Origin: Corallochytrium limacisporum Hawaii
Taxonomy: Eukaryota; Protista; Pluriformea
NCBI GenBank assembly: GCA_002811645.1
Contig: PDIP01000028.1
Location: 62,001 to 126,000 of the forward strand
Reading direction: 5' to 3'
Length of the DNA stretch: 64,000 bases
A model generated the notes under the pieces. That model was given only the letters and a program-made list of their open reading frames with translations, did no database searches and was not told where the DNA came from. Of this stretch, positions 56,981-64,000 are shown in pieces. Within the stretch, counting starts at the first letter, position 1; each line of letters starts with the position of its first letter. The position numbers were made by a program, and so were the translations under genes.

Positions 56981-58210
56981 TTAGATGCGGTGGTAGTTGT
57001 GAGGAACCCAAGGCATCTTCGTCACTGTGGCGTCAGAGAATTTCTTCCGCACCTGCACCTTCAGTTCCGTGCCCTTTTTGTGGTGAGGCTTGTTAATGTA
57101 GGCCATGGCAATGTTCTCGCCGGTGCAGGGGGATGGAATACCTGAGGTGACAGTACCAACCTCTGTGGTACCGTCCGCAGCAAAGACTTTAGAACCAGTG
57201 CGGGCGGGGGATCCTTTGATGACGAGGCCGACACGAGTCCTACGCGCAATCTTGGGGGATGCTGCCTGCGGCAAGATAACATCAGCACCGAGGAATCCTC
57301 CCTCCTCGAGACGGCGCTTGCCAATGGTCCACTTTAAAGCAGCCTCGATAGGAGTTGTCGTCTCATCCATATCCTGGCCGTAGAGGCACAAACCAGCCTC
57401 CAGTCGCAGAGAATCCCGAGCACCCAGGCCTGCAAGCTTGACGGTCTCACCGTCCATTGACTTTAACAGAGCATTGGCCAGATCAGCAGTGCGGTCTGAA
57501 TCAACACTGATCTCAAAACCATCCTCGCCAGTGTATCCACAGCGTGTGATGCGACACTGAGAAATACCAGCAACATCCATCACCGCAGATCCCATGAAGG
57601 GCATCTTGTTCAGGTCTCCTTGAATTAAGGTTTCCAAAGCTGCGGCTGCGGCTGGCCCCTGCAAGGCGAGTAGACCACGACCATCCAGGAATTCAATGCC
57701 GGCATCCATGTCTGGGAAGTTATGCAGCTCCTTAAGCATGTGTGCACGATCCTTATCGGCACATCCCGCGTTGGCAACCATGTTGATGAAGTCTCCAGCG
57801 TTTGAGATTACAGTATCGTCGATGATACCACCATTTGTGTTCGTCATCAAGCTCAAAGCTCCGGTGTTCGGCGTCATTTCCTTGATGTCTCCGACCACTA
57901 GCTTTTCCAAGAAGTTGGTGCGGTCCTTGCCATGAATGGTTAACTGTAGCATATGAGACACATCAAATAAACTGGCCTTCGTCCGGGTGTGCATATGAGA
58001 CTCCTTGTGGGATAGATCACCGTACTGAACAGGCATGGCATATCCTGCAAACTCCACCATTTTGCCACCGTGTTCTAAGTGAAAGTCATACAGGCAGGTC
58101 TTTTTCAGATCCGTGGTAGATGCGTAAGAACGTAGACCCTGGATCACACCGTTACCAGCAGCCGCAAGGGCCTGCACAGGCCTCTTGTGGGCGCGTACTA
58201 CGCTAAGCAT
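56981..58210 (-). CDS. AMT: Glycine cleavage system T protein (aminomethyltransferase), mitochondrial
   Basis: Presequence-like N-terminus, LFDVSHM, GGIIDD, TRCGYTGEDGFEI, GLGARDSLRLEAGLCLYG. First ATG at 58210. Confidence 0.96.
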   Translation of the reverse strand: MLSVVRAHKRPVQALAAAGNGVIQGLRSYASTTDLKKTCLYDFHLEHGGKMVEFAGYAMPVQYGDLSHKESHMHTRTKASLFDVSHMLQLTIHGKDRTNFLEKLVVGDIKEMTPNTGALSLMTNTNGGIIDDTVISNAGDFINMVANAGCADKDRAHMLKELHNFPDMDAGIEFLDGRGLLALQGPAAAAALETLIQGDLNKMPFMGSAVMDVAGISQCRITRCGYTGEDGFEISVDSDRTADLANALLKSMDGETVKLAGLGARDSLRLEAGLCLYGQDMDETTTPIEAALKWTIGKRRLEEGGFLGADVILPQAASPKIARRTRVGLVIKGSPARTGSKVFAADGTTEVGTVTSGIPSPCTGENIAMAYINKPHHKKGTELKVQVRKKFSDATVTKMPWVPHNYHRI

Positions 58211-59129
58211 ACTGACCAATTTTTACTTCTATCCCAAGCACCGAGCACACTTCAAATCCAACTGTACTCTACGGAATAGTGTACTTTGATCAATCCTTGA
58301 TACACCTGATAACACATTAGCCACAAGGATTCACAAAGTGAGCGAATGTCGCCTCCATCGAATCGGATGTCGGGTACGTCCTCCCCGTTTTTCGCATCGG
58401 CCATAGCCTAGGTACAGAGCTCAATATGCCGCAGTGAATCGGTTTTCCTATCAAAACATCGTGCGAAGTGGTTTCGTGCATTTTGGCCAAAACACATAAC
58501 TGTGTCCGGATGCGGAACATAACAATCCCTCATGAGCGGCACTCCTATGTCAAAGTGGGCACACTACTGGACACGACTATTATTGTGTATCCACTGCTGC
58601 CTTAAGGTAGGAAAAACCACCACGCGATCTCTCCCTCCAGACGAGGTGAATGTACCACAAGTTTTACGCTTCTCGGTCCATTCCCTGTGCTTGTCCTGTG
58701 GGGGATCCAAAGGCTGACGACCTCATAACTCTGCCTATACTTCGATAACGAAATTGTCAAAATTCCGTACTGGATGAACTGTAGAGCACAATGTAAAGGT
58801 AGGAGGCCTCTGGTAGGGACGTCACACACTCTGTAGTGAGATGGTAGCGCCCGACACATATTTTTCGCAAGCGGGAAAGAGAGGAGGGAGGAGCGGCAGC
58901 GGCGTTGTATGTGCCGATACTGTTGCGCTATTTCCTCTGAGACCCGCCGAGCCCTACAAACCGAGCATGGAGCGATGGCTATGGTATGAGGTCCTTGAAC
59001 AACTTCGCCACTGGCAATTCAGCTCAGACGCAGCAATAACAAAATAATAGAAAGATCATATGGAAAATTGTGAACTATGACGTAATATAGCGTGACGCCG
59101 GTGTTCAACGAACAAGAAGTGACTCAACA

Positions 59130-62100
59130 ATGGAGACGGTTAACGATCCCCTCCTCAAACCGGCTTCTCCTAAGGAAGAGAGCCCACCAGCACAATATGA
59201 AGATTCAACGGGAGAAACCATCGCAATATCTCGGGAGATTGAGTTAGTCGCAGACCTCGCACAGAACAGTACCTCGCAGGCGAACCTTATTGACGATGCG
59301 CCAGTACCAATAGTAGCTGGAACCCGGTCGTCTCGTACTTCAATTGCATCGATACCACCAGCAAGTCCACCCTCTGTTTTCGAATTTAGTCTTGAAGTCA
59401 AATGCTATGAAGTATTTGCTTCTCCGGAAACGGTTAAAAATTACCAGGGCCAGGTTGCACAGCAGAGGAATCGTTTGCTAGCCAAGCGACATGAAGCGCT
59501 GTCAAACAAGGAGATTTCTCCTGGAGAGAGTCAGGAACTTAAGGATATGAAAGCTGAAACAATCGAGGACACCCTGGAAGAAGAACGGCCACCCAAGGTA
59601 TTGCATGTTCCAGTGGTACCGGTGTACTGTCCGTATGACCGACTCCTTGGGTGCCATCAATTGCGTCGACCACAGCATAACGGTTTGCGAAGAATCCTAG
59701 TCACCATTCATCCCCTGAGTCGACGCAACAAAGCAATTCGAATGCTGCAAGAACGTCGTCATAAGGAAGGGCATGGAGGACCTCCTGGAAAAAAACTGAA
59801 TCTGATTTCTTGCTTGGCTGTGCGATGCGGCTACGGCAAGCGAATCGATGCGTTCAACAGTGGATTTGTTCTGTGTCACGAGATAGCGCAAACAAGGATC
59901 CCCGACGGTGGATTGAAAATTCTTGTAGAGTGGCAGGCGGATACTGGGGCTCCCGAAGCTACAGTATCTCCAGATTCACAGACGATTTCTTCCCAGCAAT
60001 GCAATCCGCAGGGATTCGACCCTAGTGATGGAAAATACTTCACTTTGGAAGTGCAGCTTCAAGTAAATGGTTGCAGGGAAACGGTGTTAGTAGAGCAAGA
60101 GGTACGGATTGGTCAGCGGAAGGAAGGTTTCCTGAATCGCGCGACGAATGCATTTATGAAGATTTTGGGTGGGGGCCCATCATACCAAGAGCCCCCGCAG
60201 GGTGGCAATGACAAAGCCATCACATCAGTTGAGGGGTCTCCGCCAAACCCAGTCGCGTATGGGTCTAATGGAACTCCAACGGAGACAGCTCAAGGTTCGG
60301 AAACGAGAATTTCCCGGATGGCTTCTGACTCATCCGGCTCCACCCTAAGGAAGAGTCCAATTGCGTCCATTGGAGATCTGGAGGAGGAGTGTTCAGTGCT
60401 CAAGGTCCCCGCTGGCGTAGAGATCAATCCGGCCGCCTCGGGACCCTTTATGGCTGCATACGACCCTCAAAATCTAGATGCTCCCGGAGTGAAAGATGAT
60501 CTGCCACGTGAGAACAGTGAGTTGCAGCAAGGTGTTGCTCCCCCTTATTGCTTCCGGCTGATGGTGGATCAAGAGCGCATTGAGAATGGTACACCTGCCG
60601 ATATCGAATGTACACAATCAGAAGAACAAAACCAAAAAGGCTGCACGGACCTTAAGAGCGCTCCGCTGGTGGCTGAAAAAGTGCCAGAATTGCTCCAACA
60701 CGCGGGCCGTGAAGCAGAGCGATACCGCCATTGGCTACAACGTAGAAGCGGGACAGCTGGAACGAAGGTCGCCCAGCAAACAGTGACTGCCGAAGCACCT
60801 ACTCCAAGGAAGCTCAGTCGCGACCCCACGGGACCATCTAACCATGCAGGGGAAGTCGAGTCCCAGACGTCGTCAACTCAATCGTTACGCGTCCACACGA
60901 CAAGTATGGCCAGCTCAATTTCTCTTGCTGCTGATGGGTCATCTCTGAGTATTGCAGACTCTAAGCAATCCATTCCCGGCCACGCGGATCCTTCAATTGT
61001 CGACATGGTTGTCCCACCGGACCATATGTTGCCTTCGGGTGCTGGCCACGTAGAAACAGATGGAGATCACTTGAGCTGGGAAGAGTGGTCGCAAGCTCTG
61101 GTTGCTTGCGAGACTGCTAATTTAATGGAGGGGGAACCAAAGATCAAGGAAGCTGCCCAGGCATCCGCGACGAAGCGCATACGGCAGCTGTCATTGCGCA
61201 GACCGGTCCCGGACAAGATACGCGGAAAGGTATGGCAGTTGGTGTGCGGCGGCGAGCATGCAATTCAACGGTACGTGGATCAGTATCCATACCTTTGCTT
61301 GAAAGCATCTCCACATGACAACGACATCATCAAGGATATCAATCGGACCTTTCCGGCACACGCAGAATTCATGCAACAAGGGGGTGTCGGCCAGGAGAAT
61401 CTGCGCAAGGTGAATCGGGCACATGCCAACTTTGATCCTGAATTGGGGTACTGCCAAGGTATGGGCTACATCACCGCAGTTCTACTCCTGCATCTGCCTG
61501 AAGAGCAAGCGTTTGGCATGCTAGCTTACATTATGCAAGACCTTGATCTGCGTTCAATGTATATGGACGGATTGGCTGGGCTGCAGCTGCGTCTGCATCA
61601 GTTGCATGGAATGACCAAGGACTCACTGCCTCATCTAGCGGAGCACCTTGAGGAGGAAGGATGCAACGTCGGCATGTTCGCACCGGGATGGTTCCTGACA
61701 CTCTATGGCTCTAAGTTCCCACTGCCTTTGGTTTATTCACTTATGGATGTGTATCTGGTGGCTGGGTTCCCATCACTGCTAAAGTTTGCGGTAGCGTTGC
61801 TGAAGGACAACTACGATGCTCTCATCACGCTTCCGTTTGATGACCTCATGAAATTCTTTCGTGGTGCCTTGCCGCGGCGCTATCTCGAAGGTAAAGATCG
61901 TGTTCGTGAAATGATTGAGGGAGTCAAGGTCAAGGATCGAAGACTGAAGCAACTGGAGAAGGAGTTTGGAGACATTGTCATCGGAAAGGCTGCAGATAGT
62001 AATATTCAGCAGCAGCTCGGGGCGGAAGGAGAACTCATAGCGCGACACCAACGGTTGCTCCAACAGTTTGAGAAGCTAGAGAAAGAACACAGAAAGCTGG

Positions 62101-62639
62101 CCAAGGATCACGAAACATTGGTAGAGCGCTTTGTGGCGCTGCAAGTGAAGCAACAGCAAGGGGAGAATGACCACAGGGATACCAAGATCGAGATGGATGC
62201 GCGTTTGAACCATGTGGCCACACAACTGGACGATCACATAGCAATGAACCACGCCTTAAGCCTGCAGAACCAGAAACTCCGCCTCATCTTGATGGAGCAA
62301 GAAGGCGGCAATGCGAAGCTGACGGAAATAATGGGCTCGGAGAACTTGTCAGTGAAATCAAGCGTTTCGTCAAGATCTTTGTCCTTGAACGAAATGGGGC
62401 TAACGATGCCCAGACCAGACAATACCATAGAACGGACTCAGTCCTCAGTGAGTGGAAACTCTCTATCTGGCGTGTCGAAGCTCAGCAGCTGGTTCAAGGG
62501 CTTCACCACCGCCAGGAGTCCTCCTTCAAGCGCCATGGCTGCTAGTGACACGGAGCCCGAGCCTTCGCAACAGAACGTTGTTAGTCCACAGGGTCCCAGG
62601 CCTCTGGCCGACAACACCCTGGATGAGATATTGTCCTAG
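59130..62639 (+). CDS. TBC-domain Rab GTPase-activating protein, RABGAP1/EVI5-like, with C-terminal coiled coil
   Basis: RGKVWQL, Arg finger IIKDINRTFP, Gln finger YCQGM, FAPGWFLTLY, followed by coiled coil. Confidence 0.9.
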   Translation: METVNDPLLKPASPKEESPPAQYEDSTGETIAISREIELVADLAQNSTSQANLIDDAPVPIVAGTRSSRTSIASIPPASPPSVFEFSLEVKCYEVFASPETVKNYQGQVAQQRNRLLAKRHEALSNKEISPGESQELKDMKAETIEDTLEEERPPKVLHVPVVPVYCPYDRLLGCHQLRRPQHNGLRRILVTIHPLSRRNKAIRMLQERRHKEGHGGPPGKKLNLISCLAVRCGYGKRIDAFNSGFVLCHEIAQTRIPDGGLKILVEWQADTGAPEATVSPDSQTISSQQCNPQGFDPSDGKYFTLEVQLQVNGCRETVLVEQEVRIGQRKEGFLNRATNAFMKILGGGPSYQEPPQGGNDKAITSVEGSPPNPVAYGSNGTPTETAQGSETRISRMASDSSGSTLRKSPIASIGDLEEECSVLKVPAGVEINPAASGPFMAAYDPQNLDAPGVKDDLPRENSELQQGVAPPYCFRLMVDQERIENGTPADIECTQSEEQNQKGCTDLKSAPLVAEKVPELLQHAGREAERYRHWLQRRSGTAGTKVAQQTVTAEAPTPRKLSRDPTGPSNHAGEVESQTSSTQSLRVHTTSMASSISLAADGSSLSIADSKQSIPGHADPSIVDMVVPPDHMLPSGAGHVETDGDHLSWEEWSQALVACETANLMEGEPKIKEAAQASATKRIRQLSLRRPVPDKIRGKVWQLVCGGEHAIQRYVDQYPYLCLKASPHDNDIIKDINRTFPAHAEFMQQGGVGQENLRKVNRAHANFDPELGYCQGMGYITAVLLLHLPEEQAFGMLAYIMQDLDLRSMYMDGLAGLQLRLHQLHGMTKDSLPHLAEHLEEEGCNVGMFAPGWFLTLYGSKFPLPLVYSLMDVYLVAGFPSLLKFAVALLKDNYDALITLPFDDLMKFFRGALPRRYLEGKDRVREMIEGVKVKDRRLKQLEKEFGDIVIGKAADSNIQQQLGAEGELIARHQRLLQQFEKLEKEHRKLAKDHETLVERFVALQVKQQQGENDHRDTKIEMDARLNHVATQLDDHIAMNHALSLQNQKLRLILMEQEGGNAKLTEIMGSENLSVKSSVSSRSLSLNEMGLTMPRPDNTIERTQSSVSGNSLSGVSKLSSWFKGFTTARSPPSSAMAASDTEPEPSQQNVVSPQGPRPLADNTLDEILS

Positions 62640-63051: not shown

Positions 63052-64000
63052 TCATTCATTGACAAGTCTTGCGTTGTACGTAACCATTTCGCCCAGACCC
63101 TTAACAATTTGGCGCGGTAGCGCATCATATTTGAACTTCTTCGCAACATCCGCTCCCTCAGTTTTCACAGCTTCGATTACGGAGCCGTCGACATGGACGC
63201 GTCCAGTCATTGCCGTAGTCTGCATCCGGCTGGCCAAGTTGACGGTATCACCAATAAGAACCCATCGACGATTTACTGTGCCCAAAATGTCTCCCTGCAC
63301 GCAACCACTACTCAACCCCAGAGTAACCTTGCCGGCAATGCCCCATGGATTGTCCTCGGCACCGAATACGCGCATGTTGCTTACCGCAATCGCAAAGTCC
63401 AGAGCCGTGCTGGCATGAGCTGAGTTTTCTTTCGGGCATCCCGTAATCGAAAACATGGTATCGCTCAAGACGTCAACCTTGGTGATACCGCCAATGCTAT
63501 CCCGGACATCATCTATGCGTTGCCATACATCGTTCAAGTAGGCCAGACGGATATCAGAGTCCAAGCACCCTATAGGTTCGACTTGGATGAAGATGACAGT
63601 GGTGCTATCATAATAGCGGTCTGTATTCTCCAGTTCACCCTCTAGTAGCTGCGCCATAACGTCCTCAGGCATCAGAGTGCCCAGCACTGTGTCACTCAGC
63701 CTCTTAGCATTGCTGACAGCCCGAGCATCCCCCGTGATAGCAGCAACTTCGTGCTGGTGAGTAATCTCCAGCATGCAGTAGTTAATCGTAGAAGATAGGA
63801 CAAACTTAGCCGCCAAATCAGCGAAAACGAAGCCAAGGTTGCTGGCGAAGGGACTGAGGATATCGAAGTAGGTTAGGAAGAATATCAACGGAAACAGAGC
63901 CCAGGTTGTGTAGGACTGGTGGCGGAGCATTCGTAGGATGCCGCTGGAATCTTTTGCTAGAGCAGCCTCCATGCCGTTCAAGTCGCTCTGCACCGCGGAC
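63052..64000 (-). CDS. Rhodopsin-nucleotidyl cyclase fusion (CyclOp/RhGC-type), 5'-truncated by the window edge
   Basis: Helix F WALFP, helix G DLAAK (retinal Lys, 63805-63807), helical linker ending LMPEDV, class III cyclase motifs GDTVNLASRM and VKGLGEMVTY. Frame is open to position 64000. Confidence 0.88.
   Translation of the reverse strand, partial: SAVQSDLNGMEAALAKDSSGILRMLRHQSYTTWALFPLIFFLTYFDILSPFASNLGFVFADLAAKFVLSSTINYCMLEITHQHEVAAITGDARAVSNAKRLSDTVLGTLMPEDVMAQLLEGELENTDRYYDSTTVIFIQVEPIGCLDSDIRLAYLNDVWQRIDDVRDSIGGITKVDVLSDTMFSITGCPKENSAHASTALDFAIAVSNMRVFGAEDNPWGIAGKVTLGLSSGCVQGDILGTVNRRWVLIGDTVNLASRMQTTAMTGRVHVDGSVIEAVKTEGADVAKKFKYDALPRQIVKGLGEMVTYNARLVNE

Follow-up and report, generated by a model that had tools for sequence, protein, structure and literature searches.

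The gene at the end of the window (the 64,000-nucleotide stretch of Corallochytrium limacisporum DNA that was analysed, C173:62001-126000) was found to encode a protein of the rhodopsin-guanylyl cyclase (RGC) family, ClimA, which can be classed neither with the homodimeric CyclOps nor with NeoR and which, judged by its residues, would form a holozoan, independently evolved and reciprocally split RGC pair with a second protein, ClimB. Together the two probably constitute an obligate heterodimeric light-regulated cyclase of independent origin, most likely cGMP-making. The initial annotation had described a CyclOp-type enzyme; the family assignment stands, but ClimA is not a stand-alone CyclOp, as Q455 and T542 make it a catalytic half needing a partner. 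The loss of the first metal Asp, the insertion in the E-F loop and the complementary paralogue had gone unnoticed in that annotation. It was further supposed that a holozoan host would extend light-gated cyclic-nucleotide signalling beyond the fungi. The direct rhodopsin-guanylyl cyclase fusion is indeed new outside fungi, whereas such signalling in general was already known there from choanoflagellate RhoPDE and the algal two-component cyclase opsins. Sensors of the fused kind have hitherto been described only from the swimming spores of fungi.

ClimA is a protein of 631 amino acids encoded by a single exon without introns (whole CDS L001:1501-3396, minus strand; protein P0001), and the exact protein is present in EukProt. 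The window holds its 3' half (Table 1), in which the helix F and helix G motifs, D377, K381, the linker and the class III cyclase first recognised there are all present in frame -1. The upstream helices that had been expected were also located, TM0 and helices A-E being encoded in the same exon up to the start ATG at C173:126947, beyond the window edge. In Pfam the window part matched Guanylate_cyc (E 1.3e-20) and Bac_rhodopsin (E 0.0045), the rhodopsin match reaching E 6e-14 with the full-length protein, and the best PDB matches of the window part were the cyclase domains of the Catenaria and Blastocladiella RGCs (E 6e-22 to 5e-20). In ClimA a single chain joins a type-1 rhodopsin through a helical linker to a class III cyclase, the effector being a cyclase and not a phosphodiesterase. 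The neighbouring RabGAP-TBC gene is convergent with ClimA and its transcript may overlap the ClimA 3' end, while a glycine cleavage T protein gene lies near; no functional link of ClimA to either neighbour was evident in the window.

Table 1. Coordinates of ClimA features and neighbouring genes in the window, and of ClimB
Feature	Position	Strand	Basis or remarks
ClimA 3' half, residues 317-631 and stop	63052..64000	-	Frame -1 open to window edge 64000
ClimA stop codon	63052-63054	-	
End of the ~38-residue E-F loop insertion	63949..64000	-	Alignment and model; remainder beyond window
ClimA TM6 (helix F)	63868..63936	-	Alignment, model; pocket residues W349 and P353
ClimA TM7 (helix G)	63763..63852	-	Alignment; D377 at 63817-19, K381 at 63805-07
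ClimA coiled-coil linker and cyclase transducer element	63640..63762	-	Alignment
ClimA class III cyclase half	63076..63612	-	Pfam, PDB search, alignment
ClimA metal/phosphate side	Q455 63583-85; T542 63322-24	-	
ClimA base/transition-state side	D492 63472-74; V563 63259-61; N570 63238-40; R574 63226-28; K616 63100-02	-	
ClimB, second RGC	C57:25438-26979 (L024:5388-6980)	+	Genome-wide search
RabGAP-TBC protein gene	59130-62639	+	
Glycine cleavage T protein gene	56981-58219	-	

The AlphaFold model of ClimA has eight membrane helices (pLDDT 85). The best solved-structure match of its membrane domain was the 8-helix RhoPDE of S. rosetta (PDB 7CJ3/7D7Q), the predicted structure giving a Z score of 30.5 over 270 residues against 7d7q, TM0 included. 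The Schiff-base K381 and the counter-ions E212 and D377 correspond to K384, E254 and D380 of BeRGC. The linker is of equal length and gapless in ClimA, ClimB, the Syssomonas protein and BeRGC; collinearity with the Blastocladiella CyclOp linker, suggested previously, was borne out by the 44 residues which separate the Schiff-base Lys from the transducer element in ClimA and BeRGC, again without gaps. The cytoplasmic E-F insertion was modelled as a helical hairpin lengthening TM5 and TM6, and the resulting E-F loop has 61 residues compared with at most 28 in other RGCs, save one Allomyces model (P0087) with 65. ClimB possesses a similar 8-helix enzyme-rhodopsin domain with conventional E/D counter-ions and the Lys. 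The near-infrared set of NeoR (E136, D140/E141, E262) is absent from both proteins, the corresponding residues being E/T/C/D in ClimA and E/A/C/D in ClimB, and NeoR-type near-infrared absorption was rejected for both on these grounds.

In class III cyclases, one chain supplies two metal-binding Asp residues and a phosphate-binding Arg, and the other chain supplies a base-reading pair, an Asn/Arg transition-state pair and a Lys. The ClimA cyclase model fits RGC cores (TM 0.88), with ~35% identity to other RGC cyclases, and is the most eroded of the set. On the metal/phosphate side, Q455 and T542 represent losses of D457 and R545 (Blastocladiella numbering), D496 being kept, and four residues of the phosphate-binding loop are deleted. 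The first metal Asp (D457) was lost only in ClimA among 111 aligned RGC-family rows, with one further row gapped there. The base/transition-state side (D492, V563, N570, R574, and K616) is kept but altered, with the guanine-specifying Glu/Cys pair appearing as D492/V563, which is acidic and non-canonical and is not the Lys/Asp of adenylyl cyclases. Since position 492 is acidic and not Lys, GTP appears the likelier substrate of ClimA/ClimB, the specificity being uncertain with a non-canonical D/V pair; given this pair and the ~35% identity, the activity or specificity of ClimA may have drifted.

ClimB has 513 amino acids from the first in-frame ATG, and the EukProt model Clim_evm8s57 is 100% identical, starting 37 residues downstream. 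Its metal/phosphate side is complete (D345, D389, and R433), while on the base/transition-state side (E385, S454, T461, and K465) the N/R pair is replaced by T/K, the same substitution as T455/K459 of RgNeoR. ClimB was also the closest match to ClimA (E 1e-43) in an exhaustive HMMER search of 1.84 billion representatives. Word-indexed homology searching with ClimA gave almost nothing, and the ClimB query and the exhaustive search were needed; no ClimA orthologue was detected by either kind of search. The ClimB gene adjoins one for 4-hydroxyphenylpyruvate dioxygenase, with a receiver-domain protein encoded ~4 kb away.

From these residue complements, ClimA should not work as a homodimer. In the proposed mechanism, ClimA and ClimB would each bind all-trans retinal and absorb visible, not near-infrared, light, and isomerisation of the retinal would shift TM7 and the coiled coil. 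The single composite site would consist of the three metal/phosphate residues of ClimB and the five base/transition-state residues of ClimA. The other site would be dead twice over and should not bind GTP, because ClimA lacks the metal Asp and ClimB lacks N/R. With no GTP at this second site, the pair would be free of the allosteric brake that has been suggested to act in the chytrid heterodimer.

A close parallel is the NeoR/RGC1 system of Rhizoclosmatium globosum (PMC7655827, PMC10622942, PMC12264004), in which, as in the predicted Clim pair, two RGC paralogues share a single active site; the subunit with T/K in place of NxxxR supplies the metals, while the base and transition-state residues come from its partner, these subunits being NeoR and RGC1, respectively, in R. 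globosum (PMC12264004, PMC10622942). The isolated NeoR cyclase is inactive, and the RGC1-D379A exchange stops nucleotide binding at the dead site and raises light-triggered activity ninefold (PMC12264004). RGC1 D379 was found to align with ClimA Q455, and, since D379A is activating, the Clim pair would have a single composite site and be without an inhibitory one; the D-to-Q change of ClimA at this position offers a natural test of the allosteric-site model. The systems differ in several respects. RGC1/2 keep all catalytic residues (Broser et al., PMC10622942), whereas in ClimA neither the first metal Asp nor the phosphate Arg remains, which makes the Clim split reciprocal. The NeoR/RGC genes are clustered (PMC10622942), whereas ClimA and ClimB are unlinked (C173 and C57), and the Ser of the DC pair occurs in the base-donating subunit in ClimA but in the metal-donating NeoR in chytrids. 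Compared with CyclOp/BeGC1 and CaRGC, ClimA shares the domain order, the 8-helix rhodopsin, the E/D counter-ions and the linker length, and all belong to a monophyletic cyclase clade (100/99); it is, however, less than 30% identical overall, lacks D457, R545, E497, and C566 as well as the Cys-rich N-terminus, and carries the E-F hairpin. Soluble guanylyl cyclase alpha/beta and tmAC C1/C2 likewise divide the catalytic residues reciprocally over two class III halves, although they have no rhodopsin gating and fall in a separate cyclase clade, and the analogy is functional only.

The closest named relative in the trees was a protein of the flagellated predatory holozoan Syssomonas multiformis (EP00128_P000236, P0006). 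In contrast to ClimA and ClimB it is catalytically complete (D349, D393, R437, E389, A458, N465, and R469), for which reason a homodimer is predicted, and no second RGC copy was seen in Syssomonas. The Syssomonas protein is also without the Pro of helix F that lies near the ionone ring, a change associated in fungal RGCs with a red shift (PMC10622942). The rhodopsin-domain tree grouped ClimA with ClimB (97/93) and both with Syssomonas (96/96), all trees having been built without RhoPDE rows. For the rhodopsin domain, AU tests rejected a grouping of ClimA either with the named fungi (p=0.008) or with NeoR (p=0.0001), whereas full-length ClimA with NeoR was not rejected (p=0.17). ClimB with NeoR was rejected (p=0.0004), which indicates that the T/K change is convergent and that the Clim pair is independent of NeoR/RGC. 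In a quick full-length tree, the Syssomonas protein paired with ClimB (SH-aLRT 99). The pair would descend from a complete, Syssomonas-like gene of homodimer type that was duplicated within the Corallochytrium lineage, independently of NeoR/RGC. Five rare residues are common to ClimA, ClimB, and Syssomonas; at least the TM1 Asp among them is also found in RhoPDE, and it may thus be ancestral and does not prove the duplication.

As the initial annotation had proposed, phylogenies were built with CyclOp, RGC, and NeoR sequences, and these placed the ClimA cyclase inside the RGC clade (100/100 against other guanylyl cyclases). With ClimA left out and the tree rooted on other cyclases, the RGC cyclases formed one clade (100/99), with ClimB and Syssomonas outside all named fungi (100/99) and also outside an environmental clade (98/94). 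AU tests rejected joining these two cyclases to blastoclads/sanchytrids (p=0.0004) or to chytrids (p=0.0009). When ClimA was included in the cyclase-only tree, it fell among fungi (98/99) on a branch of 6.95, which is likely a long-branch artefact; the alternatives were not rejected (p=0.11-0.12), among them the grouping of ClimA, ClimB, and Syssomonas (p=0.11). The environmental clade (L027, L028, L029, and L055; P0005, P0007, P0008, and P0265) is catalytically complete, and P0265 has an N-terminal extension of ~450 residues.

Vertical descent of the RGC from an opisthokont ancestor fits these data best and is considered quite probable. Microbial rhodopsins are frequently transferred horizontally, and it is conceivable, though rather unlikely, that the pluriformean RGC was acquired by an ancient transfer whose donor was a fungal/holomycotan lineage, either stem or unsampled, or that transfer ran in the reverse direction. 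The distribution of RGCs is indeed patchy (no choanoflagellate, filasterean, ichthyosporean, nucleariid, or aphelid RGC appeared among the best 120 matches listed), and the environmental clade branches between the RGCs of pluriformeans and those of fungi. Transfer is opposed by the presence of an RGC in both pluriformean genera, by the rooted position of ClimB and Syssomonas with the corresponding AU rejections, and by a GC3 resembling that of adjoining genes. No relative was found in viral contigs. A TM1 Asp motif is, moreover, common to ClimA, ClimB, Syssomonas, and choanoflagellate RhoPDE in the alignments, and absent from fungal RGCs. Raw scores to RhoPDE (96 bits for ClimB, 82 for BeRGC, 79 for Syssomonas, and 77 for the environmental sequences) were not decisive. 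The S. rosetta RhoPDE resembles ClimA in its membrane-domain structure and holozoan host, would share with it cGMP as messenger, and differs in being a homodimer with a phosphodiesterase effector, and hence in the opposite sign of its response. It may tentatively be envisaged, as a scenario falling short of probable, that the last animal-fungal ancestor possessed an RGC photoreceptor, that choanoflagellate RhoPDE arose out of this module by effector swap, and that Corallochytrium went on to evolve a reciprocal, brake-free, visible-light heterodimer. Only three RGC loci were found in metagenome contigs, at least two of them already in the set, and only rhodopsin matches below 0.9 in the ESM Atlas.

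Should the heterodimer form, ClimB might be its sole photoreceptor, with the ClimA rhodopsin dark or slowly modulating and the E-F hairpin docking another regulator. The long ClimA rhodopsin branch (3.05) and the unusual E-F insertion are in keeping with this, as is Ser242, which replaces the Asp of the DC pair as in NeoR. Breaking the pair in CaRGC (C259S) slows its photocycle (PMC8575461), and Ser242 by analogy predicts a slow photocycle for ClimA. However, by alignment to the BeRGC retinal pocket ClimA keeps E212, W213, C217, P218, W349, P353, D377, and K381, and in the chytrid pair it is the base-donating subunit which acts as the light trigger (PMC10622942, PMC12264004), so that such a division of roles is considered unlikely. 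Another reading, held to be decidedly unlikely, is that ClimA is a pseudo-cyclase and that the dimer yields little or no cyclic nucleotide, signalling by conformation or via another cyclase. Q455, T542, the phosphate-loop deletion and the D/V pair would all be expected of such a protein, but the losses are confined to the side which a base donor does not need, N570, R574, and K616 being kept, and ClimB has lost the reciprocal set of residues. The remaining clear half-site cyclases of the genome are, furthermore, already partnered in matched pairs, one row (L018) being a fragment; L020 (C235) and L023 (C33) appear to be a complementary half-site pair of adenylyl type, encoded by separate genes.

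That ClimA is a duplicate in decay, or stems from fungal contamination of the assembly, as its extreme divergence and the lack of an orthologue in the searches might suggest, is very improbable given an intact frame of 631 codons on a 294-kb contig with an animal-like ACC, mostly synonymous strain differences, and recovery of the ClimA stretch in Corallochytrium runs from three studies, with near-identical fragments in marine metagenomes. The ACC of the window scored 1792 bits against the human and 1601 bits against the yeast enzyme, in agreement with the holozoan host surmised earlier, which is C. limacisporum. A second sample showed nine coding differences from ClimA, of which six are synonymous and none affects a catalytic or retinal residue; the chance of this proportion is ~0.01 by a hand estimate in which the silent fraction of random changes was taken as a quarter. 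Two of the runs covering ClimA were guessed to be RNA, and in one of these the contig ends ~150 bases 5' of the ATG; such coverage is compatible with transcription.

The origin of the CyclOp system has been placed in the fungal ancestor (Galindo et al., PMC9616733), and heterodimeric RGCs have been given a single origin by duplication in Chytridiales (Broser et al., PMC10622942). The finding of RGCs in two holozoan genera challenges the former view and suggests a sensor older than fungi, while a convergent one-site heterodimer would challenge the latter. Corallochytrium and Syssomonas are unmentioned in the text and supplements of PMC9616733 that were examined, and no report linking Corallochytrium, Syssomonas, Pluriformea, or Holozoa to a rhodopsin cyclase was found, subscription literature being outside the search. 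These RGCs bear on pre-animal light sensing through cGMP, and the complete Syssomonas protein and the split Clim pair add new candidates to those available for optogenetics. If the proposed heterodimer is correct, it would represent a natural cGMP light switch made up of two subunits and possibly responsive to two colours. Its output might be the control of a dispersal stage (an amoeba or the cryptic flagellate predicted for Corallochytrium; PMC7147346), possibly via the kinase with three cNMP-binding domains that the genome encodes, and the pair may then mark a cryptic flagellated stage in a transfectable animal relative. As Corallochytrium is stably transfectable, the localisation and function of the RGCs are testable in the organism itself.

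The genome was searched for retinal-synthesis and CNG-channel genes, a check proposed with the original description. A Blh-type beta-carotene dioxygenase (retinal-forming) scored above the family cut-off (L054, on C64), and a bacterial-like carotenoid cluster at C230:21-30 kb (L071/L072) comprises a CrtB phytoene synthase and two CrtI-family desaturases. Neither an RPE65-family carotenoid oxygenase nor a lycopene cyclase of either family was found in the genome; in view of the latter, Corallochytrium may import beta-carotene or produce it with an unrecognised enzyme. The genome also encodes six intact phosphodiesterases of class I. No clear cGMP-gated channel was found in the genome, and in the one channel with a cNMP-type domain that was examined, which is HCN/KCNH-like, this domain lacks the usual phosphate-binding Arg motif, so that signalling by way of a cGMP-gated channel, as in fungi, is not established in Corallochytrium.

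Several other genes of related domain content were observed. A frame of 2088 amino acids at C230:3.7-8.8 kb (L012/L014/L038), ~13 kb from the carotenoid cluster, combines a cNMP-binding domain with a tmAC-like C1/C2 pair. Another single frame (L032:1360-3261) scored for two cNMP-binding domains, EF-hands and mitochondrial-carrier repeats, and in a third (L043:1369-2874) a cNMP-binding domain is fused to a D-2-hydroxyacid dehydrogenase. The genome of this osmotroph also encodes three stand-alone type-1 rhodopsins (L004:1447-2184, L005:1378-2187, and L006:1447-2196), two of them in divergent orientation on C77, with the DTD proton-pump motif and an intact Lys.
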